Shown here in pieces: positions 5,918 to 64,000 of a DNA stretch of 64,000 nucleotides (the stretch's first letter is position 1; each line of letters opens with the position of its first letter). A model generated the notes under the pieces. The model was not told the origin of the DNA. It made no database searches and worked only from the letters and a program-made list of their open reading frames with translations. Origin of the DNA: Dicyema japonicum (Eukaryota; Animalia; Dicyemida); the NCBI GenBank assembly GCA_011109175.1, contig RDEW01000001.1, positions 214,594-278,593 of the forward strand, read 5' to 3'. A program made the translations under genes and the position numbers.

Positions 5918-6930
5918 AAATCTTTTAAACATCCACTCGCTAAGACCAGAATTTGTGAACTAAAATTATTACATTATCGTTTTCGATAAGAAGAGAGGCT
6001 GAGTGCGTTCGATTGCGGTCTTGTTCGTCTTTAGGATGCTGACTCCAAGATTAACTAAAAAGCGTATTTTCAATGTCCACTTTGATGAAGCTTATGGAAA
6101 CGGGCTTTACTACTGTAAAATTTGATGGTCTTGGAATTCATAGCTTTGCAGATGATCCTCCCCAATGGGTTCCAATACATCGGTCAAGAGACTTTTACAC
6201 TCCCTTTCGAATTATCGATCTATTTGGATGTTGGCCACGTACGGGAAATTTTGAACCATCTTCATTCGTTCCTTCATCCCAATACTCTCAGCGTAGTCTG
6301 TATATGTTGTTTGCCGAATGTTATTCGAAAATCTTTTAAACTTATCGAATCAGCACCGCCGTTGTCTGGAGTTCATTCGGAGAATGGGATCTGGAACGTT
6401 TCTTGGGGATGATTCAATTAGAATTGGAGTCTCTTTACGCCTTAGATTCAAAACTTGTCCGACATTCGCGTCGAAGATCTCCCAAACACAAGGCCCTAAA
6501 ATAAGTTGTCAGACAGACTATGGATGCAGCTTGTTATCTGTCTCTGCTTGAACCTGTTTATGCAGGAATTATGGAGAACGACTAGATGAGATGTCCATTT
6601 TTCCGTCTGAAAACGAGAATCCTCGCGTCTGGGACGTCACGTGCATCTTTGTCACTAACGGCATACACAAGAGAGAATTCAAATCCTGTATGGCACCTAT
6701 GAAAGCCGAAATCTTGATTAAGAAGAAATATGCTGACTTATCCAATGGAATTGTATTTACTTCTGAGACTACCGGTGTCATGGTACCTTCAACAATGGAA
6801 TTTCTGAATCGACTTGGAGGGCCAGATTTCCTTGCGAACTTCGCGAACACATCAGGCTTTTCGAGCGAGCTTCAATCCATATTTTGAGAAAGAATAGCCT
6901 TACGGTTCGGGTAATATGAGGAATGAGCAA
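5918..6930 (+). mobile_element. Right part of a degenerate CRE-like non-LTR element
   Basis: VKFDGLGI, GTFLGDDSIRIGVSLRL and VWDVTC...KKKYADL...ETTG match CRE-clade thumb, zinc-knuckle and RLE regions. Many frameshifts. Confidence 0.65.
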
Positions 6931-8050: not shown

Positions 8051-8199
8051 TTTTTCAAATTCTTTTTCACTATTTTCTGAATCTTCTAGGAATTTCTATT
8101 TTCAATAAATGTTTCATTTTCGTGTATTTTTTTAAAAATCCTCAACTTCGAAAAAATCAAAAATGTCAGTTCTTCTTATTGTTGTATCATTAATATAAA

Positions 8200-8600
8200 T
8201 TTCAAGAATTTCGTTATTGGAGTTATTTAAAACTCAAAAAATCCTAATAGTCTCTTCAGATATGTCTTCCCAAGCCATTTTTGTAAAAAAGACCGTATCC
8301 TTTAAATTCAATTTTCTGTAGGAAGTGAACCGAAATATTTTAGTTTCCATTAATTTCGTCAAAAGATTGCGTATGGTAAATTTACTCTTAAAGATTTTAT
8401 GATGCCAATTATTTTTATTTTATGTATCCTGAAAACATCAGTAGAACTTCTACTTAGTCAGATGATGAAGAACAGATAGGCGGCCGTCCAGGAAGGACAA
8501 TCTTCTTTGATTGGGGAGTATCTGGTCCTTTTTATTTGTGAAATTAATTCACAATTAACGCCACTAAAAAACCACATGGCGCGCGCATATTTTTTATTTA
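8200..8600 (-). mobile_element. pogo/Tigger-like transposase remnant
   Basis: INLKDTVFFTKMAWEDISEETIR and GIIKSL resemble the DDE_1 C-terminus. Confidence 0.45.
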
Positions 8601-18844: not shown

Positions 18845-19338
18845 ATGGGTAATCGACTCTCAAAGGATCAGTTAACAGCCAACCAAGTTAAAGTGGATGG
18901 ATTACTCAATTTTAGATTATTGAATTGACTTGGGATGTCTTTTCTCAAGATTTGTTACATTTTGGTCAGCTTGTGTTCTTGGAGTTGTTCAAGAGGAATC
19001 CCCAATATAAAAGATTTTTCAAGTTGGGGGGAAATGATGAGGATATTTTTAGAAATTATTTATTTATTGCTCATTCCAAGCGTGTTTCCATAAGTCTTAA
19101 TATGATAATCATTAATATAAGGGATTTTGAGACTATGAGGACACTTCTTGTTAATTGGGGGGCTAAACACAAAAATATAGAAGGGTTTAAGACTGAATGT
19201 TTCATATCCCTAAAGAATGTCATCAATGGTGTTATTTCAGATAAATTGGGGGACAATTATAACGAAAAAATCAGAGAAGCATGGAATATTTTTTTGTCTA
19301 AAGTTTTTGATGCTCTCAAAGAGGGATTTCTTAGATAA
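18845..19338 (+). CDS. Single-domain globin, 156 aa, with a predicted N-myristoylation motif
   Basis: One 23-nt intron (18893-18915). Starts MGNRLS and has A12 Trp, CD1 Phe (KRFF), E7 His (AHSKRV) and F8 His (GAKH). Confidence 0.92.
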
Positions 19339-27468: not shown

Positions 27469-28200
27469 ATGCAAAAGTGTCGAGATCAATTCAAAAGTGA
27501 CGAAAATGTTTCAAAAGAAACCATTCGAGTCCACTTGGACGGTGCCTGTTATTCTTTGAAAGATATCAGGTATGAACCAGAGAAAGGCAATAGTGAATTA
27601 AATAAAGAAAAAAAAAAATTTATAACTTCATTATTGGAATATCAATCGGAGGAAATTCCAATATTATTTATGGATGAAACAAATATAAACATGCACATAT
27701 CCCATAAAAAGGGTTGATCAAAAAAGGAACAAGGGCTAATGTCGTTGCAACAAGTTCGCGAGGTGCCAATGTACATTTCATTGGTTGCATCGGGTCCCTT
27801 GGATTGTTGCATTATGAATTCAAACGTGGATCCTTTAATAAAGAATCCGCCCATGAATGGGTGAGAATTTGTCTACGAAAAGCCAGGGAAGTTTACAATT
27901 TTCCAGTAGTGCTAGTAGTAGACAATGCTCCATGCCATTCAGGAATTGAAGAAATTGTCAGAGATAATGAATTCATCGGAAATAAAATTTTAAGATTGGG
28001 TCCCTATAGCCCTATGCTCAACCCAATTGAGAATATTTGGTCAGTTTTCAAAGCTGATGTAAAAAGACACATTGCTACAGATATGAAAAATATTTTGAAT
28101 GGTGTGAGACAAGAAGCTTTGTCAACTACGGAGTTTCGACTTTAAAAGTTAGAAGAAAGTATGATTAATTCATTATGTATAATCACTCCATCTTTATGCA
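27469..28200 (+). mobile_element. IS630/Tc1-type transposase, DD35E, 5'-truncated
   Basis: FMDET, VVDNAPCH and YSPMLNPIE, with 35 residues counted between the second D and the E. One TGA plus a frameshift near 27715. Confidence 0.85.
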
Positions 28201-31949: not shown

Positions 31950-34171
31950 GATTTGTTTGGAAAACAACTCGAATATCTCATCATTCGATTTTGGTTGGGG
32001 ACATGAACGCAAAGCATGTTGATTATGGATGTGTTACAACAAATCAGGATGGAAAATGTCTTATAAAGTGGATGGAATCAGGAGAATTGAAAATTTTGAC
32101 GTCAGCAGAAATAAATCACTATGCAACTTATAGTGGTGATAAACTTGGATTGTTCATAATGCCTCTGACGATGAGTGAAATGTGTGATCCTCCATATATC
32201 GAAAATGACATAGGAAGTGACCACATCCCACAAACGATTGAATTAAAAACTGGTCCGGTTTACACACGACAGTTATTCATTGGATATGATGTCAGCAAAA
32301 TTGATTGGAATCACTTCAATTTCTACATCAGGCTGAAAATTGGTAATGTTTGTGATTTGGGGATTTCGAAACCGGAAGATATCGACATTCTGGATAACAA
32401 AATAAGATCTTTGTTGTTAAGTTATCTGGAAAATTATGGAAAAAGAAAAAATCTGTTGCCGCAGGAAAATATGATAATAGGAGTAGAAGAACGCTCTTTG
32501 CGTCAGGAGAAGAATAAGTTAGAAAATAAATTAAAGAGGTGTTGGGATATCTTCGACTCTCAAGAACTTAAAATGCAGATCAAGTTAGTGAAGAAGAAAA
32601 TAATGGATGTTGTAAAGAAGAATGAAGAAAAAGTATGGAAAAGAGAATGTTCAAAGTTACGTCGACAGAACCCAAAATTTTGGAAACTATATGCAAGAAT
32701 GAATTCTCCCAGTAATAAGAATGAAGAAATATCTCTCAAGTCAGATGATGGTCTCACTATTCCAAAAGAAGAAATTCCAAATGTTTTACGTCGACAATTG
32801 TCCAAAATTCAAGAGATAGATCCGGCATCTTTTATTCCGATAGAAGTACAAGATACAAGAAGTAGTTATAAAGAAAAGTCGAAACTGAGTGGTCCCTTGT
32901 GTCATCCTATAACGCTGGAAGAAATAAATGCTGCAATTAAGGGTTGCAAAAATAAAGCACCAGGGTGGGATTTTATCCCAATGAGTATTTTCAAGAACGC
33001 AGGCCCAATTTTGATTGAGTGCCTAAAAATATTATATAATTCTTCTTGGAGTTTTGGTCATGTTCCAGCTTATTGGAAACGAACAATTGTACGCATGGTT
33101 GTGAAAAAAGGAAAGCCAAGGTCAAAAGCAGATAGTTATAGGCCAATTAGCCTAGTCTGCTCAATATCGAAAGTTATGGAAAAAATTGTTTTCAATCGTC
33201 TATCAAGGCATGTTGAGGATAATAATTTTCTCTCTGATAATCAACTGGGATTTCGGCATAAAAAAGGGACTGGAGATTGCTTTAAAGAGCTAAGATCTGC
33301 AATCGAAATTTCACGAAATAAAAAGGAATTTCTTACAATAGCATGTTTGGATATAACAAAAGCGTTTGACAGTGTTTGGCACTTTGGACTTGTTGATACG
33401 TTGTCAAAAGCAGAAATTGGGAAAACTGCGTTATTATGGATAGAAAACTTTCTTTCAAAAAGAAAGTCATATATACGTGTTGGAAATTTAATTTCAAAGA
33501 AAATTGAATTGCGAAGAGGAGTTCCACAGGGTTCAATTCTCAGCCCGCTACTCTTCAATTGCGTAATGAGAGATTTGCCGAAAACAGAGAGCGTAAATAG
33601 TCAAATGATTATTTATGCTGATGACATTCTTGTGCTTGATTCAAGCATGAATAAACAAATTTCATGGAAAAGGGTGGAATCCCATATTACTAAGATTGGA
33701 AAGTGGTGCCAAAACAATGGGTTGACTCTATCGAGGGAAAAAACAACAGTCACTTGGATTGCAAGTAAAAGAAAAAATATTAATCAATGTGTGAATACTG
33801 GGGATATAAAAATCTCTGAAACATTGAAGTATCTCGGATTGTTGATAGACCGAAGAGGATCTTTCAAGGAACATATTAAAACACGAAGAAAGAAAGCTAC
33901 AGGAATGTTGAAATCTTTAATTCGATTTCATTTGGAGCCTGAAACTTTTCTTTTTGTGTATTCGGCGTGTGTTGAACCATTCTTGATATATGGTTATCAA
34001 GGATGGTTTAGAACAAAAGAAAGTGATGTCTTTGTCAAAAAATTGGAAAAGTCCAGAAGATTTGCGATTAAATTGGCATATGGACTGGACTTAAAATCTA
34101 ATATCGAAGAGGATTACGACCTGAAAGTCAGAAAGATAGAAAAATTATTACATCACTTATGGAAAATGTGA
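31950..34171 (+). mobile_element. 5'-truncated APE-type LINE with an uninterrupted 726-aa ORF
   Basis: GDMNAKH and GSDHIP (APE C-half), KAPGWD, YRPISL, LDITKAFDSV, GVPQGSILSP, YADD, KYLG. Confidence 0.92.
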
Positions 34172-36060: not shown

Positions 36061-36528
36061 TTACATAGTTCAGTTTTTAAGTTGACATGCACTCCCTCAA
36101 AATGAAGAGGCATATATGTGTGCCCTTCATTTCCACACCTATGAATTTTGTTCCGTTCTTTTGTTTTAAAGTGTGTACAAATACTGAAGTCTTCGATTAT
36201 TTGGTAATATCGAGGGCACTGCTACTCCTCAGTCTCCAAAATTGCCGTCCTCTATGTGACTGCAAATCTTTGACTATGAGAAAAAGATTGGACTCAGTGC
36301 TCATTTTCTTAGTGATCTCTCACGTGTAAAACTGTCAAAAAGTTGTAAATGTTTTGAAATGTGGTGTTTTTAAATCTACTACCTACACTCAATAGAGCAA
36401 TCAGGCATTAATTGTTGTTGCTCTAATATTAAAAAATAAAAAATAATTTATTAAATGTAATACAAAATCATATCTTTTTGTCACGAGGTCTGTATGGACG
36501 TTTAGGTCTGGGATAATAATCAATATGT

Positions 36529-39143
36529 CTATAATAAACAAAAAGGTAAACTGTGGTCTTTGTTGAAAAAGCTGAGGTCGTTGATAGTATCTGTAATAAG
36601 TTGGTGGAATTGTGCCTGACTAATGGGTGATTGATTATGTGAAGGACTAATCATAGACCTAAATCTTCTATTTTGGAAAGCATTATTGCAATTGTTTCGT
36701 TTATTCAATTGTGCAGCAAACATCTTCTTAAAGTCACTGCAATAGATGGCCTTGCATTGATCATTAAAGCATGTTTGAATATGTGTTTTGTAGATATTAA
36801 TAAGTTTGTTACATGACTTGCAACAAGTTCCAAGATGACATGTCCTGTAATGTGGAATCAAATAGTGTCTGAATTTCCAGCAAGTCTGATTCTTGCAATT
36901 TGCATTATTGCAGGTGAGAATATGATCAAAGTTAGGTGCATTGTTATTATAAATTTTGATTAATGGGTGATTATGTGTAATACTATTAAGACATGTAGAA
37001 CACAAATCAAAATCCTTGCATATAGTACAGTGATGTCTCTGAATAGTAATAGTTTTGTTACAATTATTACAATAGTAAGGATTAGATGATAAATGTAAAT
37101 CAATAAGAATAGAGAACGTAGAAAATTTGGCTCTTCTATATGATGAGAATTCATAATTTTTATCTCTACAATAAGTGAGGAAGGAATCTCTAGTATCTGT
37201 GATATCCGAATGAATGACTGGATCAGGATCAGTTATAGTCGTAATATTGCTGTTTAATTCAATCACAAAAAATAAATTTTTGTGTTTATCCAAAGTATTT
37301 AAAAATAAATCATTAATAGTTTTCTTATTTTTCTTCTAAAAATATAATAAAAGATTACATCAAATTGTAATTTAATAATTTCTTCAAATCTACAAGGCCA
37401 GAAATCCCCATCAAAGTAAGGTATTTGATTTGGTGAATAATTCATATCAATAACATGGGTATTCAAATCCTTTATTAACAATATAATAATACCTGATATC
37501 CCCTAATAATATTTTGAGTTATTGCACTATTCAACATCACTTTATACCAATCTGATAATTTCTTTGCATTGGGAATTTTTTGTTGTGGTGGATGTGAATG
37601 AAATATGTAGTCATCTCTGTCAGACGGAGGACATGCCCAAATATAAACCCTCAAAAATCATAATAAAAATATAAAAATACCCCATATTGCGTACATAGTC
37701 CATATATGATATTAATATTTCATGATATATCCGTGTTCTAATGAATTGGCATGATAAATAATTAACACTATCCAAATATGCTATATATACACATCTATTA
37801 TTAGGACTAGGACAGTCTGATCCATACTCCTGTATTTGCAATGAAAAGAACATTATTTCAACATCATTCTCTTCCTGTATAAAATATATAGTCTTTAATC
37901 TATATCCATAACTCTCTTCTCCCTTATATTTTTCCTTCATATATGGCTTCACTACACTTTTCTTTTCTGTACACGAAAGTACTCGCACATGAATATACAG
38001 TCCACTTGGTAATAATCTATTTATTCTATCCTCAATGTAATCACTCACTCTTGTTCTTCCAAGGTCTTTATTATAATATGTATATTACTTTTAGCTCTAA
38101 ATCTGTTTACTTGTCTCTCTCCATTACACTCCGCACATACATAACCTTCTCTATACATATTCTCATTATACATCACACAAATCTCATGTAAACGACGGTC
38201 ACATTCTTTACAAACTACAAACTTTTCATCCACCAATATATTATTATTGCATTCTTTAAACTCTGATTTATGAATATTCACAATATATTCTCCTCCCTCG
38301 TTATAACACTTTGAACAATATATTTCACTATTCCTTTCATAATACGTACAGTCCCCACCAATCTGACAACCATTTATACAATATAGCATTTGTAAATTAT
38401 ATGTCATCTTCTTACCACAACAATATTTTAGCCTATTCTTCATTCCCTCACTTATTTCAGTCGTAAATAATGACAATATTTTTATTGATGACTTGTATAT
38501 TGCATGCTTACTGTTGTTGTACTCTTGCGCGTTCCTTACCATCAAATTAAAGTCTTCTATTATATCCCACGGACATACATACAACGATCGTAACAATTTA
38601 TTATATATTGTCGACAAATCCATTCCTTTTTTAATAATATCATAATAATTCTAGCATTATACACACATATATTACAGGGGCTCCATCCCTTTCACTGTTT
38701 ACTGGCTCTCGAAATGCTATCCACTCTTCACTGTTCTTTAGTTTCTCTATCACCGGCATAAACACTTCTTTTATTAATTCTATTCTTTTACTTTTCTACA
38801 CATTTCACATTTTCATTACCTCTTTACTCTTTATAAATTCTTTATCATTCTTAAACTTTATACATAAATCTAACATTATTATACACTATACCATTCAGTT
38901 CCCTTGTCGCATTACATACTATATCTAATATGTTAATGATCACTTAACCTCCACACCCTTCACAACTTGTCATGTGGTCTATAAACCTCTTCATTCGCTT
39001 ACAACTGTCCATACAACCATTACATACGACTGCGTGATTGTATAGTTTTATATATATTGGGGACTATTATTTTATTGGAATAATACTTTATCTATTGTAT
39101 CGTCTATTTGACGGGTTTTATTGAATTTTCGCTCAATGTTCAT
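36529..39143 (-). CDS. CREBBP/EP300: Miniaturised CBP/p300 (KAT3) histone acetyltransferase, about 798 aa, 10 exons
   Basis: Removing nine GT-AG introns (23, 24, 22, 24, 25, 23, 31, 23, 23 nt) leaves 2397 nt of open frame: TAZ1-like, bromodomain (YYDIIKKGMDLSTI), RING, PHD, HAT (IWACPP..DDYIF, LSDWY, PYFDGDFWP), ZZ and TAZ2. The C-terminus may extend through one more intron. Confidence 0.93.
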
Positions 39144-39239
39144 TTGCTGCCAATCCTTAACATAAACTGACCACAAAGACTAAGTATATTTATATATTTA
39201 TTTTATTATAAATAAATATTTTTATTATTTTTATAATTT

Positions 39240-39440
39240 ATGTTTATTTTTACTCCATTTCATATTAAAAATTTTAATTTAATTAATATAATTAATGGAC
39301 ACCTACCTCACCTTGAACAAATTCCGTACGCTGACGTGCAATTATTAATTAAGCGATATTATGACGGCGATACTCCGTTTATTATAATTGACACTATTAT
39401 TGATATGTTGCAAATTTATACTAATCCTATCAAGATTTAA
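39240..39440 (+). CDS. Small ORF head-to-head with CBP, unknown
   Basis: 66-aa ATG ORF starting 96 bp from the CBP start across an AT-rich gap. No motif. Confidence 0.25.
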   Translation: MFIFTPFHIKNFNLINIINGHLPHLEQIPYADVQLLIKRYYDGDTPFIIIDTIIDMLQIYTNPIKI

Positions 39441-42493: not shown

Positions 42494-43433
42494 AGAGGGA
42501 CGTCACCACCTCAACCAAAAATCGGACAGGAGGGGATGGGAAAGGCTAATTAAGAGGATTGTTCGGACGCGGCACGAATAGAATTATAGTTTATATGATT
42601 CTATGTAGTTGCTTATAATAATAATAATAATGTTGTTTCGATAAAAAAGAGGATTTAATTTATGTGAAATAATCAGTTATTTGAACCAAGTATTATACTT
42701 TTTTCTTAGAATTTTTGAAATTTTTATTCAGAATTCATAGTATTCTTTGAGCCTTTCAGGGCAAGTATTGAATAAAGAAGTTTCGAGATTATTCATTATT
42801 GAATCTTTTAAACATAACCCTTCAATGTCATCATTTTCATTACAAGTTCTATTATCTTCAATTCCGTTTATTTCAAATTCAATTAACCCTGAGACATGTT
42901 TATCAATTAATTCAGAAGTTTGAATATTCTTGAAATTTGTGGCACGGTGCATTATCCATATGTTTTTTGACCATTTCAAAGTTTATTTTTGTAACCATTT
43001 ATCAAAAATATCAGTCGTCATCCAATCATTTTTGACGCTGTGTACAAAACCTAAAAATAACCTAATGAAATATACCCCATAATCCTCAGAACTTCTTAAA
43101 TGAGAGTTCATCAGAGCATAATTGTGTTTTTGATACCCCTTTCCGATTTCTTTTTTAGTTCGTGAGACAGTTCCTTTAACAATATTGTATAATTGACAAA
43201 TTTTTTTTTCTGACATATTTTCTTTCGTTAAAGAATCGGAAATCTTCTGTTTCAGGTGGCGACTAAGCTTCGCAGGCATGATTAAAAATATTTTAAAATT
43301 AATTAAATATTTAAAAATGAAATAATAAATTTTAATATTATCGATTGAAAAAGTGCCCAATAAGCAGGGTTTGTATTTTAAATTTAGGCTTCTATTGGTC
43401 AAAAATTTTTGATTGAGGTGGTGACGTGCCTCT
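42494..43433 (-). mobile_element. Internally deleted pogo-like DNA transposon with 29-bp TIRs
   Basis: AGAGG(G/C)ACGTCACCACCTCAA(C/T)CAAAAAT at 42494-42522 and inverted at 43405-43433. HTH N-terminus and DWMTTDIFDKWL inside. Confidence 0.8.
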
Positions 43434-43469
43434 CTTGCACCTATGTCTGCAAAGGATTCAGAACAAATA

Positions 43470-45500
43470 ATGACCTGACCATCCTAACCTTCAATGTCAG
43501 AGGCCTGAATAACGTGGCTAAGAGGCAGCTTCTATGTTCCGATGTTGAGAAATACCGGGGTTCTGTATGCTGCCTGCAGGAGACTAAAATAAAAAATGGA
43601 CTCGATGAAACACATGCAAATTACAGGTTACTATTGCTTTCCTCGGAATCGAGGCATTATGGACAAGGCTTTGCCATACACAAGGACTATATTCCCAGAG
43701 TATATCGTTACTGGAAAGTCAATGACAGAATCAGTGTCTTACAACTACGTACAAGATCAAGCAGAAATTCGAGGAGACTAATCTCAATTATCAACGTTTA
43801 CGCACCACACAGTGGACGTATCCTAAAAAATCCCGAAGAACTTGACCTGTTCTACAAGGAATTGGGAAGGACATTAACAGACTGCTGTTCATTATACTTA
43901 TTGTTTATTGCCCGGGACTGGAATGCGAAAATGGGAACCTGTAGAGGAAATGAAAGCTTCATTGGCCAGCACGGAAGAGGAATCAGAAACTTCCCCGGAA
44001 CCATCTTGGCAGAGTTTTGCCAGGCATTTGATCTGTTCCTATGTAATACTGGTTTCCAACTTCCCGCACGTCATAAAACGACATGGACTGGGCAACGACT
44101 TCTACCTATCAAAGGCTCTATTAACATTTTCAATCAAATCGACTACATCATCTGTCGAGTCAAAGAAAAATCACTCCTACGTGACTCGAGGTCTTACGGA
44201 GGTGTAGCTATCGACAGTGATCAAAAGATAGTCTCTGCCAAGTTTACAATGAGGACTTTGACTGACCTAATAAGAAGAGAGCCAAAAGTAGATGTAGGAA
44301 GAAGCTATAAAATGGAACTACTGTGTTACTCTACATCGATCAGAGACAACTACCAAATATCAATTACGAAATTTCTCAGAAACCTGGATCCCAGACTTTT
44401 TCTAGGAGGCACCTGGGCGGAGACAATGAAAGGGATCTTCTCGGCAGCAAATGGGAGTATCGGAACCTGGTCCCAGCACTGTTTAAAAAATGTATACATC
44501 CAGATGTTCCCCCTCATTAAGAACAAAGGGAACTAAGGATTACAACTGGAAATACGTCTGATCCGGACAGGAAACAAATCTTGAAGTCTAAGAAGATCCA
44601 CCCAGAAAACCATAAAGATTTTGAATAAGAAGCACGCCACTAACCTACTACTTGATCAACTCTATGTTTATAAAAAAGAATACCCAGCTTTTGGATCCGG
44701 ACTATTAACACCAATACAAAAACCTAACAAGCATGCTGGGTTTTTGAAAACCTACGTCCAATAATCCTGCTAAACACCTTACGGAAACTTCTGGCATTAG
44801 TTACGCTGAACCGAATCAGAGAACAAGTGGACAACTATCTATCTCCTAGTCACAGTGGATTCAGGACAGGAAGATCCACTGCAGATGTAGTATGGAGCCA
44901 CAAGTGGCGCTGCGCTATCAACCAGAGATTTGAAAGTGCAACGACAGTCTAGACCTCTCTAGGGCCTTTGACACGGTCCTTCGTGGTCTACTTCTCAAGA
45001 TACTGAAACAATTCTTGGACCCAGATTCTGTCAATATGATCAGAGTGTTGCTATCTAACACGAAGCACAGAGTGCGGGTCGGTAAGACGTTATCCCGTGA
45101 ATTTACGTGCAATGTTGGTACTCCCCAGGGAAATTCCTTCTCGCCCCTGCTATTTATCATATATCTGAAGGCAGCACTACGAGATCTTCTGAAGTTCTAT
45201 GATGGCAACATCGTCGAAATTGCCTATGAGGACGACGTCGACTTTGTGTCAGAAGACAAATCTGCCTACTTCGACTTCTCGAGCTGGCCCCTGCTGAGCT
45301 GAACAGATGGTTCCTTGGAATGAATATTGCAAAAACTGACATTGTGGAAATCAGGAGAATGGAAAGCAGATCAAGTGAAACATGGCGAAAAACAAACAAA
45401 CTTGGCTTTTTACTTGGAGACAGTCAAGATATTGCCAGAAAGAAAGCCCTCACTTGGGTAACGATGAACAAGTTGAAGAAAGAGTGAATTGACAAACGAC
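43470..45500 (+). mobile_element. Degenerate RTE-type LINE
   Basis: APE (TFNVRGL, CLQETK, NVYAP, NQIDYI) and RT remnants (DLSRAFDTV, GTPQGNSFSP, AYEDD). Confidence 0.85.
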
Positions 45501-51086: not shown

Positions 51087-54000
51087 TTAAAATTTAAATA
51101 TATTTGACGAGACCTTAGCAAAGAAAAACTTCCAAATAACAGCGGAAGCAATTCCAACGAATGCCACGGATCCCAACGAAATTCCAAGAATGAGCGGGAG
51201 TTTATTGGATCCTCACTTTAAAATAAACCAATCCATTACCGGTCCTCCATATACGACTTTGTCCTCATAAATTAAGCTTGTAAGGGCAGCACTCTGATCC
51301 GCAAAATGTAAAATATTATTTTGCTTTAAGAATGCGGCAAACAGAGTGCCAGCATCGTCCATTTCGGTGATATTTCCTTCAATCACCACAGTGACCCTGA
51401 ATGTCCCTTAACTTAACTAGATTAGCTGTACCGGGGGATAGTTGGAAATTCACAAAATTGATATCCGAAAAGTTCAAACTGATGTAATTAAACAAGGTGG
51501 CTTCAATCTGGAGAGGATTGACTTGGAGGTGGGAGATATTTCTGTCTAATTCCATGACTATTGGTTTACTGACCGATAAATTCCAGTCAAAGTCTAAATC
51601 ACAAAAAACGAAGACTGCTGTTGTGGACTCGAATGATTCTGCTTTGTGTGGAAATATTGTAGTCGTTGGGATGACTTGCAACCTGAACATTCAGGATATA
51701 AAATCCAATCTGAGAAAGTGGATAATATGAGACGTTTAAAGATCCATTGACGATTTGCTGTTGGATGGGAGCTAATCGAGTATATTGGAACACTTTGGTG
51801 TCGGCAACGTCGATCTGGTATGTCCAATTTGAAATCTGAGGTGTACTACAAATATACCCTCCACGATAAATTACTGATCGTCGCATTTTCGATGATGTTG
51901 AGGACTTTGATGAAACCAGATATCGGTTGGTTTATGAAGACTGTGGACTGATTGAGGAGTAAGTCAACGAAAAGCCGTCTTTTTAGAATATTTAGGGGAC
52001 CAATGGAGGCTATGAATGAACTGTTCAGGGACTGGAACTATAAACACGGAAAAACCCGGAAAGTGAAATTTAAGTTATTTCCGTAAAATGGAATTCGGAG
52101 TGATGAGAAGTTAGCCGCCCCCGATATGAAACTGGCTAGGAACTGTCTCCCACTGATGACGTGGCCATTGGCGGAAATTTCAAGTTGAATCTTCCACGGG
52201 TCATACATTGAGCCGAGGATCCCCAAAGTCGCATTCTAATATATCACCAACTACAAACATTTGGGTCCAGCATAATTAACGAAAACCAGGTTGACGAGAC
52301 CGACTCTTCGTAGATTACGGATGGCCGGGATATTATGAGCAATTTGTCGGGAATCAAGATTACCTGTAGAGAATTTTGATATTGCCCCCACATGGATGTA
52401 TAAGTTGGGGGAATTGGCTCTAAAATCGATAGGGTTGATATCTTAAAGTAATTCCCAGTTGTACAGAAATGTTCAGAATGGTCGAGAGACCAGTACTCTG
52501 GGCTGTGTTCAAAATAATGGAGGATATATTCTGCATTTGTTGGTCAGACAAAAAATTCGTCGAGTTTGCGGTCTCGTTGGCTAAATTCGAAATTTCAATC
52601 AAAAAAATGTGATTTATCCTCCGACCTTTTGGCTCGGTTAGAGGACGTCTCACGGACTACATTTACGACTCTGACTTTGCTGGGGGATACTCCGAGGAAT
52701 GATATTAAATTTTGTAAAACATTGGAACCGAAAAAGTCAATCTCAGAGACGACCGATGACACTCCAATGATAACACTTTCCGTAAATTCGATGTCGACAG
52801 CCTGTGACCCCTCAAGCCGACTTGGAGGTATTTTGTGGAACGATTTCTATACTTCCCACCAGAAATAGTTGTAGTGGGGGTAATCATGCGATCTATAAAT
52901 AGTACACACTACCACTACCACTGGGGAATATAGGCACTCCGTCGATGGAGACGTTTGTCCCCTGAACTCTGTCAAAAAAGTATTCCACGACTAATTTGTC
53001 CTCAGAGTTGGCATTCAATAGTCTCAGTCTCAGATGGCGGTGCAGATGATGTCATAAATAACTGATAAACTCTCCCTATAAAATATCCCCCAATCACTAG
53101 CAACCGGTGGAAACAATAGCATAAAACGTGGATATCCTCAATTGGCAGGTATATCCATTACACCAGCCATGATCAGCCGGTCCATTAATAAGATCAACAT
53201 ATCCCCCACTTCTGATGGCGATCGGGGACAACCTCCTCTTTTCTGTGTCACTATCCATGCTCTCAATAACTAGTATGCGATATTTATCCCCACAACAGTT
53301 GTACGCCTTCCAAACAGGATTGTAAGTACAGTTCGAATTCCTTATTATTCCTGTTTGTGTCAAATTCAGAGATACCCAAGTGCTGTCTCACGTGGTTGAT
53401 TGGAATCTGAGAGCCATTGGGAAATATCTTCATGCTCGTTGGAAGTCGGTAATCTCCAGTCCCCCTACTTCTATCTCCATTCCAGGCAAATTCAGACTTC
53501 GGAAAAGCAGCACAGTCCCTAGAACCGAGGAGAGTCCCATCAAGGTCATTTATGAGTGTCTTCTTATTCCCATCACAGTCCATATCGACGCAGTCTGAAG
53601 GATTCACCTTTCTAAGATATAACTCAAATATACCCCAATGGGGGTAAGGTCATAAACAGATATTTGTCCGTTGAGATGTTGTATAAGCGGATATTTGACG
53701 TTCTTATCGGATGTTGGAAGTCATAACTCAATTTACTCGACATTATCAACCCATCGTCAGTGGAACAACTTACTGCACCATTACTGCTCACATCCAGATC
53801 TAGTCATCAGAATAGCATAGGACCGGATAAAGTCATGAGTCCCCCCAATGAAGGGTACGCCATTGGGTTGTTCCAATCTTTATAAGCACCCGGTAAACCC
53901 TCTGAAATGAAATTTGGAAAGAACAGTCCAACTCTGACATTTCTGTTAATAGAACTCACGCTGGAAGAAGCCAGAGTGGAGCTCTAAGGATGAAGCTATA

Positions 54001-57000
54001 ATTTTACAATTCTGCTGAGGACATGTAATACTAAGCCGTTTTGTGTTATATCCCTTATTACAGCCTTTTATGACTCAATCACGTTATAAGATGACGTGGA
54101 GATTACAATCTCTTCACCAATGCTCCAATCGACGGCGTCTTCTAAGTAAATGGTCCTCTCTCCGGAAACAGCAGTTCTATTAAGCGCCGTGAAGTAAATG
54201 TTGTGATCAACACCGTGAAGATCTACTCCACCAAAAGAGGCTAAATATAGGTAATTTGATACCAATGACTTTAGTCCCCACAACAGATCCCACAATTCTT
54301 GGAAATGTTTGAGAATTGATGTTTTCTCTCAGAACAATGTCCAGTCTTCCCTGAAAGGCGTTGTCTTCTATCTCCGCTATGATACGTCCCCCTCTTATGA
54401 AGATCACTCCGCTGACAAACAAAATCTCGATATCCAGAGCGCGTTGAATTATCAATTCCGTCAAATTTAAGAACTCCATACACGTGTAACTCTTTCAATG
54501 TTGGAAAAGCCACATCTGCTAAAACCCACGTGCCTGAATAATTAAGCGTGAAATTAACCGGCAGATATCACGACGACACTCCCATTGGATGGCATACCAC
54601 CACCTGAACTTAAACTTGCGTTCCACTGATTATTTGTGTAACTCCAAATATTTCTGTTTGACTATCTGACATAATTGTTGGGTCTATTTCGTTGCGGGGG
54701 GAGGTTTGTAGAAACTGGGGGAGGCTCACATTTCGGGTAGAAGCATCGGTACGCATTAAATCTGACCCAAAATCTTCGAATAGACGAATACATGTGACAC
54801 TGCTCGTTCTGGGGGACATCACTATTAATTAGCTTTTGACCCACCAATATAGCTTAAAACATTCCTGGAGGAGTTATAATACCAATCTCCTTATTGTTAG
54901 TCTCCACATTCAGGGGAAGCAGGGACATTGAACGGTTAACAGTGGAAGTCGTGAAAACTCGATCGGGTTTCTCCCTCATAGACTGATACACAATGATATA
55001 ACCCCCACTCTGCGCATGAAATCAATTCAAACCATTAAGTGATCTACCGCTGCTTTGTAGGAAATATTTATTGAACTCGACTCGACTGGGAATTGCAGAA
55101 ACACATTGTCATTTGCCGGGACAACAGCATTCATCCTAGAGGGGAGGTCATCCTCTTCTCTGCAAAATAGCTCGTTTCGTTGCCGTATTTCACGATTATC
55201 TTGGCATTCCTCGCTAAATAGAGGGTCGGGAGGATATCTGGCATTAAAGCGAATGAAACCGTTAAATGATAATCTCGCAAAGCTGTACCTTCTGAGGACA
55301 GAAGGATGACTGTATTCCTTGTGTATTTTGGGTATTCGTAACACAATCAGATGGGACCAAATTGGAATAGGGGACAATATTTGTCACCGAACCAGTCTGG
55401 GACCCGTCAGAGTCTGCAATGACTCCCTCGTGTATCCAATTCCATTTATATCTATTATTTGAATTTGTAAAGTGAATGTTTCTAATTAAATAGAGAAATC
55501 CTGCAAAAGTTAAGGAAGCTCAACTCCCACGAGTAGGTAGAGCTGGTGCCATCAATCTTTGCTTGGTAAAAGCACGAATATCCGGATTCGTTGTAATTAT
55601 AGAACTTTATGTTATTCAGAGTTAATCCATTTGATAGGGAAGGACTACCCCATACCCTGAAGAAACGGGGGTTACTCCAGGAATGTAAGCTAAATCCGTA
55701 TCATCAACGGTCTACCAATAATATCACTGTTATTGAGGAAAGGTCCTCGACTTGAGTATTCCACGCTGAAGGAATTCCTCATCATTTCGATATTTGCGAC
55801 TTTATTGGCGATAGTAACAAATTGTCAAATTGTAAAGCTCCCCCGTTTGCCCACTCGGCTCGTTTTTGATTGTTCCACGAAGTAAAATTTGTAAATCTCG
55901 CAACAGTGGGATTTCCATTTTTTCTCCCATCCACACGTGGGTAATAACTTGAGTAAATACCAAGGAAACTCCTTCGAAAATCCATATTCCGTACCACCCC
56001 TGAGAGTGAACCTCGTTCCCTCAAATATTCCTATTTGTCCGTTATTAGGAGCCACCGAGGGGTCATACGAAGGTCCGTCCACGGTTTTATGCAATCTGTA
56101 CCTTTCAATAAATATCAGAGACATACCAAAAACCAAAATGAGTGCCTCCTGCTACTGTGTTATATCTGACTATATTATTTGGATTTGTGAGCCAATAACC
56201 AGCGGGGGTTACGTCGTCATTTAATAAGCTGGAACTTCGCTTGACATACACGTGCAAGTTGTACTCAAAGACGTTGTGGGTTTCAATCCCATCCTCTAGG
56301 AAAAATGCCCCGCCCATTATGTTGTAATTGACATTCCTTCTTACTGTGATCCCATGCGTTCCTTGGAGGGGGTTAACGCATAACATACCGTGAATGTTAA
56401 CAGCTCTGTTGAAACTCTCGTGAATAGCACACCCGTTGACGTAGGAATGTCTATTCCACCCCGAAAGGTGAAAATGTATTGGATATCGTCCCAGACGAAA
56501 GGCTTGGCCGACGTAGTTGAACTCAACATGTGAGATCCTCACAATTGCTTCGTCCATACCCGGATGTCTTGGAGCTATCATGACTGTTCCCCCAAATTGA
56601 TCATTCCCTATTTCATCTCCCTCTCTTCCTTGAAAACAAGTCTGTACCGCGAATTGTCCTAGAATATGGTAATCACGGAATCCTACCCAACTTGAACTCA
56701 TCAGGACATCTTTCTATCTTAAAGGAATAATTCAGATTTCTTGTCCCCTTGATTTTAACATTTCTTGTAAGGAGACCCACCTTGGCTCGCAAATTCACTG
56801 TCTTTCCTCGTGCATAGTTATAAGTGTAGGCAAGCTTGTGATATTTTTAAACTGATCAATCTACTTGATTGGGTCCTAAAGGGTGATTGTGGTCCGATTG
56901 GGGGATATATTTGCAATTTTATGAACTTCATTTTCTCTTGCGCTGTTCATATCGCCGGTACTCGCAATCACGATGGTCTCATTAACCTTGACTTGACCCA

Positions 57001-60000
57001 ATAAACATACATTCCAATCGACTGGGTCTTGAAGTTCTAGGACCATATCCCCGACATTGGCGGATACCACTAATCGAGTCCACGTGACATTTCTATATCT
57101 CTCTATGTATTAATAAAAGTGAAATAACCGTGAAAATCTACGTTTCCACTTCTGACCCCGACTACATTCGATCCGAATATGGGGAACGTTTTTGACAAAA
57201 ACTTTGAGTGCAGCTCTATCAAAGCTTGATGCTGGAATGGTCTGCCTTCACTCCCAATCTAAATTAAATTTATATTAGCTTACTCTCAATGATCCGTTAT
57301 TTGTGATGAAAATATTTTCCGCGTGAAGTTCGACGTCTTCTCATCAAATGTTAGTGATCCCCCTAATTATCCTCCCTACTAATCACCGTTTATTAGAAGA
57401 ATCTGAAGTACAGGTGTGTTGACGTCAAGTAGGATATTTAATCCATGTGGTATTACAACAATTTCACCAGCCTTGGGTATATCGTAACCTCCCCAGGTAA
57501 ATCGCGAAGACCAGACGTTCACATACTCGAATATGACATCTGAGACATTTCTCTAAATTTATCACATCGTTTGACTAACAGCTACTGCTAATCCACTTTT
57601 CGAAGAATAAACTTGTACGGGGACCTAGCGTTTCCGTGGTGGAGACGACTCACATTGGATCAGAGAATTGTTGATAAATCTTATGATGCAGACAGAACCG
57701 TCAATTGTGACATTGGTCGCATTCTGGTCATTCCTGGTTGTTAACAAAACGTATTGACCTGAAACCGAATCCATAAATTGAGAGATTAGTTCCTCCCCCA
57801 GTTCCTCCTCTTTTGGGGGTAACATAGTAAATGAAGGAAGTATCACTCGAATTGTAAGTAAATTGATTGGAGTAGTTTATAATTGCTGTGCTTGTGTTTA
57901 TGGTGACTGAGCAGTTCGTGTCATTTTGCGAATCTACAATAAGCATGTGAGGATCACAAGTCATCGTGGGAGTCTCAACCAGCATTTCGGAGTGATTCGA
58001 CAGTGATAAAATTCTAGAATATATTCCACAAATCGAAATATTCATGTCTCGAGTGAATCCATTTCCACGCACCTGAACCACCTGCTTGCCTCCATATCCC
58101 CCTAATCAATGCAACCAAAGTCTACCTCTCCCTGGGTATATATCCGATATGGATAGCACGTTGGTGTAGTTTTCCACAGAGTTTGAGTCTCCGTAAATAA
58201 GATGTTTGATTTTTATGGAATAATTCCCATACCCTTGGTCGGGTGCTGAACAAGATATTATAAACAGAGAAAATGATATAATATTGCATATCTCGTTCCC
58301 TATAAGCACGATGTTGTCGCTTTCATTACCCACGAAACCTAGTTAATTGATAGATTATTGACTACCACTCCCAGCAATTAAAATTTGAGTATTTGCACTT
58401 CCACTCATCGGCCTTACGAAGCCTATCATCGGACTTTTACTGGGTTCATAACTAAACGCTAGTTGGTTGAAGGAATATGAGGCACTGATCACAGACAGGT
58501 TTTTACTCACACTCGTTAATAAGCGGGGTGTCAGACAAAATAACTATTTTATATACTAAAAACCCACCTCGTTTACTTGACACTGAGTTATTCTACAGGT
58601 TACGTTTTCCATAGTAGCCGTTATGTTGTTACAGTTGAATCCGAATCCCGTTATTTTTACCGTCGTTCCCCCATGGGTGCTACCAGAAGCTGGTTCTACC
58701 GTCGAGGTATATCCATAGCTATTTATCGTGTTATTCACTCTAAATTCAGCTTTCCCGTATCCTTCGACGTCCAATGAAAGCTGATGTTCTCCAACATCCA
58801 GATATGGAATCAGAAAGTAAACTCCACTTTGGGAGTTATTCAGTGAGTAGTACACCCTGTTTTGCATTCTCAATATACTCCTCCCGTTCACTGACGTCAC
58901 ATTTATCCCCGACAGTTTTATGGTCGTGTTTGGTCCCGTAATATTCGTGGGTTCAATTCGTAATACGAATGGCGTAAAATTTTGGGAGTAGTGGAATCCG
59001 ATATTGTTAGTGTTCACTGCGTAATAACTTCTACCCCCCGTTACTTTGACCGATATATTTAGGATGGCATCAACCGAGTGATTTTGAGTTCGACATAATA
59101 TTTGAGTCCCATTTAGAGATTCGATGAAGCACGAATTGGGACCAATCCTGACTTGTGTTGAATTTACGTCGAATTTCCATCCGGTTATTGTGATCAAAGT
59201 ATCTCCCTTAGTTGATCCCTTGTTAAGGACAACCGTTGATATTTCGGGCATAAGATAAACAGAGTTCATTGAATCCTTTGAAAGTTGGAAAAGTCCGTAT
59301 CCATCGTTTTTAGTCCAAACTCTCATCAGCCTTTTGTAGCCAAATGAAGAGTTCTGCAGTTCGTCCATTTTGCAGGTAATTCTAGTTTTATTGGATTCCA
59401 AGACGACGCATCGTTGGCCATCAATGCTGACGGAGTTCTGGCATGTTCTGCCACCAAAATTAGTCCCTGTATTTCCCAAATATATTATACCAGTAATGAT
59501 TATACTCCCATAGAAGCCCCTATTTGGCTGGGAGACGGAGAGGATTTTCGGACCCCCACAATTTGAATAGGTAAAGTTAAAGTCAGAAATCAGGGTACAA
59601 TTATTTACTATATTCGGGCAATTAGGGGGTTGAGGCTGGGTTAGACTGTTGTTTACTGATAAAATAATAATAACCGCATACATGCATATTCTGGAAGAAT
59701 ACCCACCATCGTCACATTTAGGGGGAACGATTCATCTGTGTTATTGACCACATTCACGATTCCCTTCAAGAACAAATCACGGTCGGCAACGACCGGGAGA
59801 GACCAGTAAAAGTACTTCCCCGGCTTTAGAAACTGATGTTTATATGTTCCTTGTAAATTTAAAGCATGAAATACCAGAATTTGAAGCATTTCCGCTAACG
59901 AATCCCCGAGAAAGGAATTTCGTATTTGTGAGGGAGTGTGTTTGATGAATCTTATAATTTATAGAGGTAATTCCAAGTGGAGAGAACCACTCCCACATTA

Positions 60001-63000
60001 CATAGTCGCCAACTCGGATTGTTACTTCGTCAGGCAGCCATCGGTACCCCTTTCCATTTTCTATATATTAGTAATATCAGTACGTGAATGTACCCCAAGG
60101 TTTGTTACTTTTTGTACATTCGCACTCTCGGATGTTTTGCAGCTTAAAAATGTTGAATTTACGAAATTCACTTCACATCGATGGTTCCCCAATCTTACTG
60201 AGATTTCGGAGCTATTTCCAAGACCTTCTCCACCAATGCTCAGTTCAGTTCCTCCAAAGATGGACCCACCAGTTGGGAACATTGACGTAATCTTAAACAC
60301 ATAAATCAAGTTGTATTGGCTGAGTCTTAATTTTCAAAACGAATACTTGTTGATTACTCCGTTTCGGGTTTTTGCCTCAAAAGAATAATTTCCGGGAGAC
60401 AAAGACGGAGTAAGGAAATAGTAAGAGTAATTAGAGCAGGAAGACTGGTTGATTTCAACGTTGTTTATATTCAAGACTACAGTTTCATTTCCACATAGCA
60501 AATTACTTATATTGAGTGTTAATGTTTGACTCCCTTGGCTGAATAAAAAACGCCAACCTGCGACACTAAGATGAGTAGGATGCACCCCCGAAACCATGGG
60601 AGTTGTCGAATCTTCGTAAACAATAATTCCAGCGTGATAGAATCTGTTTAAATTAAATAACGAAATTCTGTATATTCCAATGGACTATTAAATCGTTAAA
60701 ATTTGGATACGTTTTGGATTGGGGTCACAAACGTCATTCTGTACATTGACCTCCTTACAATCACCGCGGACTTTGAATCGACAAGGATCGTCATGTTTGC
60801 TTGGAACCCGAAGCCATTGATAGTCAAATATTCACCCCCTAAGTATAACAGATTTAGCCACCATTGATGGAACTAACATTCCTGGAGATGTTGGTAACAG
60901 ATATTTGAGGATTTAGACAAAACTCTTGGGCCAATCTGGCGTATCCGATAGGGTCTACCAATACGGAAACGTTGCAGAGGACGTTTATGTCATTTCGAAT
61001 ACTTAACGAACAGTTTATTTCGTTGGGGGAAGATTGAAATGGCACACAGTCGTTCCCACCAAGCAGAATAGTATTTGATGATAAATTTGCGCTGAATAGA
61101 GTCCCTCGTAGTGTTATGTTAGTTTCGGGATTTTGTACTAAACATGATCAGTTAGTAAACTCGAAAGAGGCTCAATTGAGGTGACTGTTGGTGTAGACAT
61201 GTTAGCTACTGAAAAAGAACAATTCCCAGAGCAAAGGGAAGGAGATTCGTTTATTATAACCTCAACTTGTGGCTCGGAAAACTTTTGTCTTACCATTGAT
61301 TGTGGAATATACGTACGAAGGTGACCGTCAGCCACTAAATAGTGGGATATTTGAATTCGATCATTTGATGTGTTCACCTAAAAATTCATTTGACGAATGT
61401 GACCTGAATCGATTCGGCATTCCCCTTCTACGACAGGAGAGCTATGTAATACCGAGAATTTTCGCAGTTGGAGTACCCAGATACGTACAGTATCCCAATG
61501 TCGGGGAAATATTCCAAGACACTTTTCATGTTGGTCGCATTCAGTTGAGCTTTAATATCTCAGAAATGCTACTGTATAAGGGAATGTCGCAATACTCCCA
61601 TGTAGTATGGTTCAAGTCAATGTAGCACCAAGGACCTAAGGGTTTTCCGTCGGGATTTCTGCAGAAATTATATTCTTGCCATTTACTAAAAGGCTCAACC
61701 TGAAGAATTCCATTTCTGGCATTTAAATCCGTTTTTCGTAACTGAAGTAGTCCCAGCATAATTTGTCTCCGCTACAGTGACTTTACAGTCGACGACTAAA
61801 TCACGTTTATAACATTCCAATAACCTTCTGAGGCTTTGATAGTCTTCCTGTTGAAAGTGAATACTAGATCTCCTTCAGAGGGGGAGCTCATATTTGAAAT
61901 TTTTTGACAGTATGGAAAATTTTGATTATTTGATATCTACGAATCACTCTATATCGCTGAGAACCATAGCAGGGGGAATATTTCCGAAGCAGTAATTCAA
62001 CTGATAAGTCACGTTGAGATGATTTAAAAATTTTGAAACGCTTATACGACGTACGGAATATTTACTCGGGGGAAGCACTCTCTGATTGGTCAAAATTGCT
62101 GAATCAATTAAATCAAAAAACATATTTTATCCGTATTTCTGCGAGTAGTGCTTAGAGAAACGAGATCATAATAGACCAGTCCCGTGTTAATCACTTCCGC
62201 CAACTTTACAAGGACGATCGACGACTGGACGTCACTCATCAGCTGTACAAGGTCAACACACTCGTAATTCCATTCCCTTTAAAGTGACAAGTCCCATATC
62301 AAACAATATTGAATCTTGTAGGGATAAATTGTATGTATTCGAGGAATAGGTTTTCCCGTCCGTAGAATATACGATATACAAGGAATTTGGGGGATATCCG
62401 TTGTAGGCAAAACACAGCTTGTTATAGAAGATTATAATTACCATTTTGAACGTTACTATGTTGGGTTTGTTTCTCAAAGCTTCGAAATTTAAAATCTCAA
62501 TTAGGTTTTTATTAGAGTGTCCCCCACAGAATGCGTTACCAAAGTAGTTATCGGAAGTTTCAAAGTCCTCCACGAAAAATACTGAATTTGACAATTTATC
62601 GAAATCTTTAGGACACCGAATTTCATAGGCCTTCATGAGTTGTTTCTCAATCTAATCATTAAGCAAGCGATACCTTGCTGGTATTAAAATTTAAAGAAAT
62701 TGGCGGTAAGTTGTAATTTTCGCTTTTTAATAGCAAATAGTAACTCCCAGAAGTTCCATTAGCTATTTTATTGAGAAAATAGTGTGAGACAGACTCGTTT
62801 ACACTCAAAAAAGAGAGTGACGTGGAATCACCTATAATAATCTAAAAACAAACCCGGATGTATCGTGAAATGTAAAACGAAGTTTGTAGTGTTTTCAGTA
62901 TTCGTATAGTTCTCTACATTTACAAGGTAATCCCCCAAGATTGGGTGTTGGTCAACTTTGGCTTGTAGAAGCTGTGACGTGTCGCTGCTTTTTAAAATTT

Positions 63001-64000
63001 CTAGTGTAAGCTCACTCTCAACCCGTTTCAACGCTATTGAAGCTTATTCGGTATTCCGCATTGGTCTTATTTTTATAAATCCGCACTCCGATGAGATCCC
63101 CAAGTGGGGACACTAATTGGTTGGGAAAGAAGCAACTCTACCCTGTAAGTTAGGTAATACATGTTGCTCTGGAATGTAGTAATAATTCATGCTAATAATC
63201 TGCTTTTCTGGGACAACCAATGGGAGGGAGATCCATTAATATGGGGATTCGAAAAGTTTGAAATCCACGCGGCAAGTGGACTCCCCGTTGTATTTTTTGA
63301 GTATAGTTATGTAATATCTTAACGTAAGTGATATCACAACCCTCTGTCTTTGAGCAAATAAAATCTCTTAAATGTATATTGGTCGCAGATTGTGACCTAT
63401 GAGTGAGTACTTTGTACTGAATCAGTAAATTTGAAGCAAAATAAAGTCAAGGACTTGTCGTTCATGTCAAATTGATAGTGTCCACTTTTTGGTGGACGGA
63501 ATATTCCCGATAGTCTGATACTCATGTCTCCCGTAGGAAGTTTTATGTTTCCAGACAATCCTCTAATCCTCCCATAGCCAGCATCCGCGGAAGTGTTGTT
63601 CTGTATCTCCCTTAAACTGGAAAAATTCGAAGAGGAGTTCCAATATTCTAACAGGAATCCTCGACTCCCTAAAATATCAAGGTTCAAGAAAACCGGAATA
63701 GAAGGTTCCGTTAAAGTCCTTATCCGCCTTACAAACAATTTTATGCTTATTGATGGATCTTATCGTGCATGTTCTCCCTGCATAAGTTATACATAGCGAT
63801 TCAACCCCCAACTAAAGCGACAGTGCTGTCATTGTAAAAGTTACGACCAAATATCGTCGAAATAGTACCTCCCTGTTGACTGCCCAAATTGGGGGTGATT
63901 CATGTTATTTCTACAATTAGGAATGCAGTAAACCCGCGTATGCCTCATACTGTCCGTATTTCAGATTATTGAATAGCATTACTGACTGAGAAATCGATCT
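51087..64000 (-). pseudogene. PKHD1L1: Fibrocystin-L (PKHD1L1)-like gene, disabled; 5' end outside the window
   Basis: IPT/TIG repeats (GSxxGGTxxTIxGxGF), PA14 (63400-63660), cupredoxin-like repeat, two G8 domains (about 57150-57540 and 54200-54620), PbH1 region (FRLGRYPIHFH, FFLEDG) and a C-terminal TM. Dozens of 21-30 nt introns. In-frame stops at 63900 (TGA), 61428 (TAG), 57625 (TAG) and 51213 (TGA), plus several frameshifts. Confidence 0.9.
61573..61795 (-). other. Kringle module (two exons) inside the fibrocystin-L-like gene
   Basis: DC...NYAG...KCQKW...FCRNPDG...PWCY...WEYCDIP. Introns at 61796-61824, 61675-61699 and 61550-61572. Confidence 0.9.

Follow-up and report, generated by a model that had tools for sequence, protein, structure and literature searches.

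A compact CBP/p300-type acetyltransferase gene with a shortened autoinhibitory loop and no recognizable KIX domain in the dicyemid Dicyema japonicum

The window analyzed here is a 64,000-nucleotide (nt) stretch of the genome of the dicyemid Dicyema japonicum (contig RDEW01000001.1, positions 214,594 to 278,593). It contains a KAT3 (CBP/p300-type) acetyltransferase gene on the minus strand. The gene starts with an ATG at 39143 and ends with a TAG at 36531–36529. In the minus-strand frames of 36300–39400, stop-free pieces changed frame every few hundred bases, and short GTA...AG stretches lay between them. The resulting model has 10 exons and nine GT..AG introns of 23, 24, 22, 24, 25, 23, 31, 23, and 23 nt. 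The spliced frame was 2397 nt, with no internal stops. Its 798 codons agree with the protein of about 798 amino acids (aa) that the first-pass annotation, made from the letters of the window, had proposed. DNA read contigs from four runs of one sample were collinear with the window and contained no joints.

Pfam and PDB searches were performed exon by exon, and the joined frame was used for the codon and stop counts. Pfam found zf-TAZ in exon 2, zf-TAZ and ZZ in exon 10, and a bromodomain and a PHD_P300 domain between them (Table 1). The RING_CBP-p300 match was below the threshold but at the expected place. HAT_KAT11, the histone acetyltransferase (HAT) domain, was found in exons 7, 8, and 9 with E-values of 8.5e-24, 6e-9, and 5e-3, respectively. 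When the exons were compared with all PDB chains using phmmer, the matches were exclusively CBP/p300 (exon 7, E 1e-32; exon 10, E 1e-30; exon 8, E 5e-19). The exon 10 alignment included the C-terminal part of the HAT, ZZ, and TAZ2. Exon 8 (YIWACPPSDRDDYIFHSHPPQQKIP...LSDWYKVML) was aligned to the p300 segment ending in ...LQEWYKKML, and YFDGDFWP of exon 9 was aligned to YFEGDFWP of p300.

The catalytic motifs were kept. YIWACPP corresponds to HIWACPP of p300, and SDWYKVML corresponds to QEWYKKML, so the catalytic Trp (IWAC) and Tyr (DWY) are present, as had been noted before. The L1 loop, the groove motifs DPDP and RDxFL (here TRDSFL), the CoA-binding motifs, and every zinc ligand of ZZ and TAZ2 were also conserved. 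Judged from the sequence, the active site appears competent. As expected of a KAT3 protein, ZZ and TAZ2 directly follow the HAT. As in the holozoan and metazoan type, a module of bromodomain, atypical RING (DUF902), and PHD precedes it. The bromodomain is split by the 25-nt intron 5 (38675–38651), and its acetyl-lysine-binding Asn (…EYN) is kept. The open frame together with the domain matches indicates a real, intact CBP/p300 gene of about 800 aa, which was also the earlier reading.

In human p300 and CBP, the hypoacetylated autoinhibitory loop fills the substrate groove, and trans-autoacetylation frees the groove and increases the activity 4- to 10-fold; RING and TAZ2 contribute steric restraint (PMC12547938). 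The metazoan-type HAT contains a lysine-rich loop of ~50–65 residues, and the window gene does not have it. Exon 9 ends with ...EEIIKLQFD and exon 10 starts with KKNKKTINDLFLNTLDKHK. No hidden loop exon fits between them because they are separated only by the 23-nt intron 9 (37358–37336). Fourteen residues separate the anchors on the two sides here, compared with 65 in p300 (chain 8hag_K, exon 9 aligned to 478 and exon 10 from 544). This bears out the claim that KKNKKT plus a few residues is all that remains of the loop. The KKNKKT linker resembles the KKNNKKT core of the vertebrate loop.

The loop was then compared across the family. The span from GDFW to xKHK was 27 residues in the window gene, 70 in a dicyemid relative (locus L001, see below), and 61–190 (median 84) in 35 other KAT3 proteins. 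The window gene had the shortest loop of the 36 KAT3 sequences measured, ~51 residues below human p300. The span from GDFW to RDxFL was 61 residues here and at least 69 (median 123) in fifty others. Only two sequences came near it in this span, P0053 (a Logan contig of ERR11571142) and a spider isoform X3. P0053 is a KAT3 fragment (HAT-ZZ-TAZ2) without the lysine-rich loop, with ~33 residues between GDFW and ERHN. Given P0053, loop-less KAT3 proteins may exist elsewhere.

The KIX domain, which in the metazoan type lies between TAZ1 and the bromodomain, was also missing. There is no room for it because the first bromodomain helix follows the last Zn2 cysteine of TAZ1 after only ~28 residues. 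These residues are encoded by exons 3–4 and the start of exon 5 and are interrupted by three tiny introns; TAZ1 runs to 38820 in its last exon, and the bromodomain exons start at 38795. A count of 150 nt from the last TAZ1 exon to the first bromodomain exon likewise leaves no space for KIX. No KIX-like match was found in the 64 kb by tblastn or with a hidden Markov model (HMM) built from 12 animal KIX domains. The earlier description of a KIX-less protein with about 25 aa between TAZ1 and the bromodomain was therefore confirmed.

TAZ1 itself is reduced. The zf-TAZ match scored 23.9 bits, slightly below the cut-off, and covered profile positions 5–46 of 72. The Zn1 and Zn2 ligands were kept. 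Compared with animal TAZ1, the third site lacked its His and two of the three Cys, so the site was lost and not merely weakened, and the three-zinc TAZ1 of the metazoan type is not present. The first-pass annotation had correctly noted the missing His but had overlooked the two cysteines. The termini are short, with about 10 residues before TAZ1 and about 70–90 residues after TAZ2. For NCBD/IBiD, there was no Creb_binding match in Pfam and no tblastn match with the C-terminus of frog CBP. The NCBD/IBiD and long Q-rich region of metazoan C-termini are absent from the model.

Table 1. Positions of the KAT3 gene, its parts, and other features in the 64-kb window.
Feature	Position	Strand	Evidence or remark
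Whole KAT3 gene	36529..39143	-	Frame without stop; domain matches; E 1e-32 and 1e-30 to CBP/p300 chains
Upstream stretch, 24–26% GC	39144..39300	-	Probable promoter; in-frame stop 13 codons upstream of ATG
Exons 1–4, short N-terminus (~10 aa) and degenerate TAZ1	38820..39143	-	zf-TAZ E 5.6e-5; ligand comparison
Bromodomain	38489..38795	-	Exon 5 and start of exon 6; E 2e-11; tblastn with frog CBP
CBP/p300-type atypical RING	38339..38434	-	RING_CBP-p300 E 3.1e-4, below Pfam cut-off
p300-type PHD finger	38123..38227	-	PHD_P300 E 4.6e-10
HAT_KAT11 catalytic domain	37084..38065	-	Exons 7–10, introns 7–9 inside; Pfam and PDB alignments
Intron 7	37650..37680	-	31-nt GT..AG as modeled, or 22-nt GT..TG 37680–37659
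Autoinhibitory loop remnant	37315..37370	-	...LQFD, intron 9, KKNKKTI...
ZZ zinc finger	36967..37083	-	E 1.4e-7; aligned to p300 ZZ
TAZ2, twelve of twelve zinc ligands	36739..36930	-	zf-TAZ E 5.5e-4; alignment to p300 TAZ2
C-terminal tail, short, without NCBD/IBiD	36471..36738	-	Extra base in 4/4 runs; alternative frames; no Creb_binding match
Globin, single exon	18916..19335	+	Pfam Globin E 1e-16, full domain
Fibrocystin-L/CEMIP-like gene, multi-exon	52000..63800	-	IPT/TIG repeats E 2e-24; CEMIP beta-helix E 2e-39
Long interspersed nuclear element (LINE)-type reverse-transcriptase open reading frames and DDE_3 transposase fragment	2465..5959 (-), 9933..10370 (+), 31952..34168 (+), 43388..45299 (+); 27708..28142 (+)		

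Two details of the gene model may differ from the version described above. Intron 7 is the sole 31-nt intron, and when it is removed the protein is three residues shorter than every homologue directly ahead of the catalytic Trp. If a 22-nt GT..TG intron is removed instead, the protein reads NMG-FLR-VYIW and has 801 aa; the frame is kept either way. The restored FLR aligns with FMT of the dicyemid relative (NMG-FMT-AHIW) and YTT of the human protein, and the length then matches the human one. The homologues agree better with the 22-nt form than with the 31-nt GT..AG form. The other detail is in the tail. All four DNA read sets contained an extra base relative to the window at 36605–36607, a G after 36605 in one run and an A after 36607 in three runs. 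The site encodes part of the C-terminal tail, and the assembly likely has a 1-base deletion there. Because all four read sets carry the extra base, the final 23 residues of the 798-aa model are doubtful. With this base, the tail reads ...FPPTYYRYYQRPQ... and is rich in P, Y, R, and Q. The corrected tail may run through a tenth 23-nt GT..AG intron to a TGA near 36471.

To place the gene, exon 10 was used in a HMMER scan of 1.84 billion representatives. The top match was P0001 (E 3e-58, 51% identity); the next had an E-value of 7e-36, followed by animal CBPs. P0001 is XP_029655242.1, annotated as "CREBBP-like [Octopus sinensis]", and its locus, L001, lies at 203144–225038 of the 382-kb contig VCDQ01001334.1. 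The introns of L001 are 22–30 nt long, and we know of no octopus genes with such introns. For this reason we regard the contig as dicyemid contamination in the O. sinensis assembly. Among animals, introns this short are reported only from myxobolid myxozoans and D. japonicum (PMC13644364), and O. sinensis is the host of D. japonicum. A GC content of about 36%, run dates of 2019, and Nextera adaptor ends in the read contigs also agree with the D. japonicum project. As a by-product, the protein listed in RefSeq as "Octopus sinensis CREBBP-like" seems to stem from dicyemid contamination. Its Gnomon model is confined to the C-terminal 557 aa, and the exon with YMEGDFWP and the first loop half is missing from it. 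A maximum-likelihood tree joined the window gene and P0001 as sisters with 100/100 support and placed two myxozoan CBPs in a clade of their own. The match ranking and the tree rule out a myxozoan affinity of the window gene.

L001 retains most of what the window gene lacks. Its ATG lies at 7483, and the N-terminus that follows comprises 98 low-complexity residues. TAZ1 and the bromodomain are ~155 residues apart, the lysine-rich loop region has 70 residues (…AVDEQEQRIKDGSQ… / …KRPNSKTEAKKSKKTKSKIRRK…), and TAZ2 is followed by ~270 residues. An intron splits its loop where intron 9 sits in the window gene. At 8145–8321, where KIX belongs, there was a sub-threshold KIX_2 match (E 0.003), but neither phmmer against PDB nor the HMM of 12 animal KIX domains detected a KIX there. 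The two genes share a 33-nt micro-exon in TAZ1, the loss of the third zinc site, and introns at eight homologous positions. Six introns differ, L001 having more. Two places in L001 were irregular. A 23-nt intron at 9754–9776 is apparently GC..AG and is needed for the in-frame ...PNNR|RVYIAYLDSV. At 8470–8530, no canonical GT..AG intron was found that would link the first bromodomain exon to the exon whose end lies near 8490, likely due to a non-canonical splice or a different exon end.

The two genes have diverged considerably. Their identity was 45–71% per exon and 45–51% in the most conserved region. In the tree, the window gene had a branch of 1.23 and the relative one of 0.46, a 2.7-fold difference. 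The mean intron length was 25.7 nt in L001 and 23.2 nt in the window gene (p 0.004; paired p 0.023). The coding guanine plus cytosine (GC) content of the window gene was 0.30, the lowest in the window; other genes of the window had 0.32–0.44, and L001 had 0.38–0.42. No synteny and no common repeats were found between the window and L001, which had only the KAT3 gene and a distant reverse-transcriptase similarity in common. Word-indexed protein searches with the exon 10 piece and with P0001 revealed no other dicyemid KAT3. A genome-wide comparison of intron lengths was discarded because the intron finder called equally many "introns" on control strands.

Taken together, the gene retains the bromodomain, RING, PHD, HAT, ZZ, and TAZ2, and a remnant of TAZ1 with two zinc sites. 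Its secondary losses comprise the long N-terminus, the TAZ1–bromodomain spacer, ~50 residues of the loop, and the long C-terminus, which is rich in Q and P and contains NCBD in other animals. The short form was derived within dicyemids, and recently, since L001 keeps a long spacer, a full loop, and long tails. We consider it likely that the locus encodes an intact, probably functional dicyemid KAT3 that was stripped of these parts secondarily.

A possible mechanism follows from the short linker. The two HAT halves would be joined by FD-KKNKKT-I, nine residues with four Lys, which is probably too short to reach the substrate groove. Such a loop could not act as a pseudosubstrate, and the autoacetylation switch is therefore expected to be lost. 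Any remaining restraint would come from RING, TAZ2, and bromodomain contacts only. Recruitment would rely on TAZ2, ZZ, the bromodomain, and the TAZ1 remnant and not on KIX-binding activators. Recruitment without KIX would fit a genome with a very small set of transcription factors; the D. japonicum genome is strongly reduced, with 5,012 genes, of which five are bZIP_1 genes. In the human enzyme, deletion of the loop was said by the first-pass annotation to be activating, and the literature agrees (PMC12354013, PMC12547938): a p300 HAT without residues 1523–1554/1555 is reported to be constitutively active in the text of PMC12354013 that cites Thompson et al. By analogy, we infer that the window enzyme could be constitutively active. 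A stronger version is that the gene encodes a natural, recently evolved "loop-deleted" animal CBP/p300 that has no autoacetylation switch and is recruited only by TAZ2, ZZ, and the bromodomain; dicyemids would thereby have made a small acetyltransferase out of a signal-gated, activator-docked coactivator. We put this forward tentatively and lean toward doubting it. If it is true, the loop-bearing sister gene, possibly with KIX, provides a built-in comparison. It would represent the ancestral state if it belongs to a sister species, and otherwise a conventional paralogue that works alongside the short form.

Several observations weigh against an intact, secondarily shortened, and freely active enzyme. 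Loss of the loop need not give constitutive activity because the RING and TAZ2 brakes are kept. The lowest coding GC in the window and the 2.7-fold branch could mean relaxed constraint. The KIX match in L001 is weak, being below the cut-off, and the segment is at most KIX-like. The end of the C-terminal tail is uncertain. The introns are predicted from DNA, and expression of the gene is presumed.

The alternative that deserves most attention is that the same dicyemid genome carries two KAT3 paralogues, the window gene and an L001-like gene with the long spacer, the loop, and the tails. The window gene would then not be the sole CBP of the organism but a duplicate that evolves fast and is subfunctionalised (or is slowly decaying). 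The low identity to L001 in the most conserved region, the six intron differences, and the lack of shared synteny and repeats are all consistent with it. The unequal branches and the odd AT-rich composition form a pattern common in duplicate pairs, and D. japonicum inhabits the very octopus whose assembly contains L001. However, identity of ~50% is also possible for orthologues because Dicyema species are extremely divergent, with mitochondrial proteins only 39–75% identical between Dicyema sp. and D. japonicum (PMC6543705). The longer introns of L001 and the absence of any common DNA repeat both hint at a different genome, and a second copy would be less expected in a genome reduced to 5,012 genes. 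We regard two paralogues as a serious possibility, though not the one we favor. Its outcome bears on the earlier suggestion of a "CREB-independent" acetyltransferase. The suggestion can apply to this protein only, as the related L001 has a long spacer with a weak KIX-like match and a full loop. An L001-like paralogue in the genome of the window gene would mean that the organism itself does not lack KIX.

The other alternatives fare worse. The short form might be an artefact of the gene model, with further exons for an N-terminal region, KIX, or a longer loop located elsewhere or alternatively spliced. The introns are predicted from DNA, intron 7 may be non-canonical (GT..TG), and a possible acceptor lies directly upstream of the ATG. 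But TAZ1, the bromodomain, and both HAT halves are contiguous, and the 22–31 nt between exons leave no internal exon. An in-frame stop precedes the ATG, and no open frames, homology, or further coding exons were seen in the 4 kb upstream on the same strand. An artefact is thus very improbable. A pseudogene or non-functional relic whose frame is open by chance would explain the AT-rich composition, the long branch, the degenerate TAZ1, and the 1-base discrepancy, but the discrepancy sits in a disordered tail, while 798 codons are open across nine introns, and the catalytic and CoA-binding motifs and the ZZ and TAZ2 zinc ligands are all kept. The summed bits to outgroup CBPs were 508, compared with 536 for the longer relative, which we take as equal. 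We think a relic improbable. Introns of 22–25 nt with GTA..TAG ends resemble those of Paramecium, and in a protist, such as a ciliate, the absence of KIX would be ancestral and unremarkable. This is hardly credible here: the gene uses the standard code with no in-frame TAA or TAG, its bromodomain-RING-PHD module is of the holozoan type, its best matches are animal CBPs with a sister gene in an octopus assembly, and the neighboring genes are animal-like (fibrocystin/CEMIP-like and globin). A ciliate origin in particular is ruled out by the standard code and the animal relatives. An intact, secondarily shortened dicyemid KAT3 therefore remains our preferred reading.

The rest of the window includes a globin gene, a fibrocystin-L/CEMIP-like gene, and many repeats (Table 1). 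The globin gene had no relative in a word-indexed protein search. The GC content of the fibrocystin-L/CEMIP-like gene was 0.41–0.44, compared with 0.30 for the KAT3 gene. Repeats, including LINE-type reverse transcriptases and a transposase fragment, make up much of the window, in line with reports for D. japonicum.

CBP/p300 is a central coactivator of animals. The KIX domain and the autoinhibitory loop, both drug and disease targets, are regarded as nearly universal among Metazoa. CBP, p300, and CREB go unmentioned in the two dicyemid genome papers, and a literature search found no paper pairing dicyemids with CREB-binding protein. The KAT3 gene described here is a concrete case of regulatory simplification in dicyemids.

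Compared with metazoan CBP/p300 (human p300, 4BHW and 8HAG), the window gene has the same domain order, bromodomain-RING-PHD-HAT_KAT11-ZZ-TAZ2 with TAZ1 upstream. The catalytic Trp and Tyr motifs, the L1 loop, and the acidic residues of the substrate groove are common to both, with 36–61% identity per exon. The metazoan proteins are ~2400 aa and the window protein is ~800 aa, without NRID, KIX, NCBD/IBiD, and the Q-rich tail. Myxozoans are also a parasitic animal lineage with tiny introns, but their CBPs (Thelohanellus kitauei KII69208.1 and Henneguya salminicola KAF0990936.1) are 1237–1691 aa and keep the lysine-rich loop, with 100–101 residues from GDYW to RSGFL compared with 61 for the corresponding span in the window gene. 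In the loop, the window gene resembles the engineered p300 HAT from which residues 1523–1554/1555 were removed, which also has a short linker between the HAT halves. The window form differs in being natural, in retaining the four lysines of KKNKKT, and in having RING, TAZ2, and the bromodomain.

The KAT3 proteins outside Holozoa (plant HAC and protist p300-like proteins, TAZ-KAT11-ZZ-TAZ) are also compact and KIX-less (PMC5560861). A KIX-less KAT3 architecture is not new because it is normal outside Holozoa, and the claim that the window gene defines the minimal KAT3 core was an overstatement, P0053 being loop-less as well. Those groups lack KIX as an ancestral trait. The window gene still has the bromodomain-RING module of holozoans and lost KIX secondarily, and the loss is notable because the owner is an animal, which the first-pass annotation had not recognized. 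What is new is that an animal has secondarily lost KIX, loop, and tails beside a close relative, L001, that keeps a full-length loop and long tails. L001 also has six introns more than the window gene, is richer in GC, and sits on the 2.7-fold shorter branch. A natural enzyme without KIX and loop and a loop-keeping relative form an evolutionary pair for asking what the loop and KIX do, and the pair also bears on the minimum size of a working bromodomain-RING-PHD-HAT-ZZ-TAZ2 unit.

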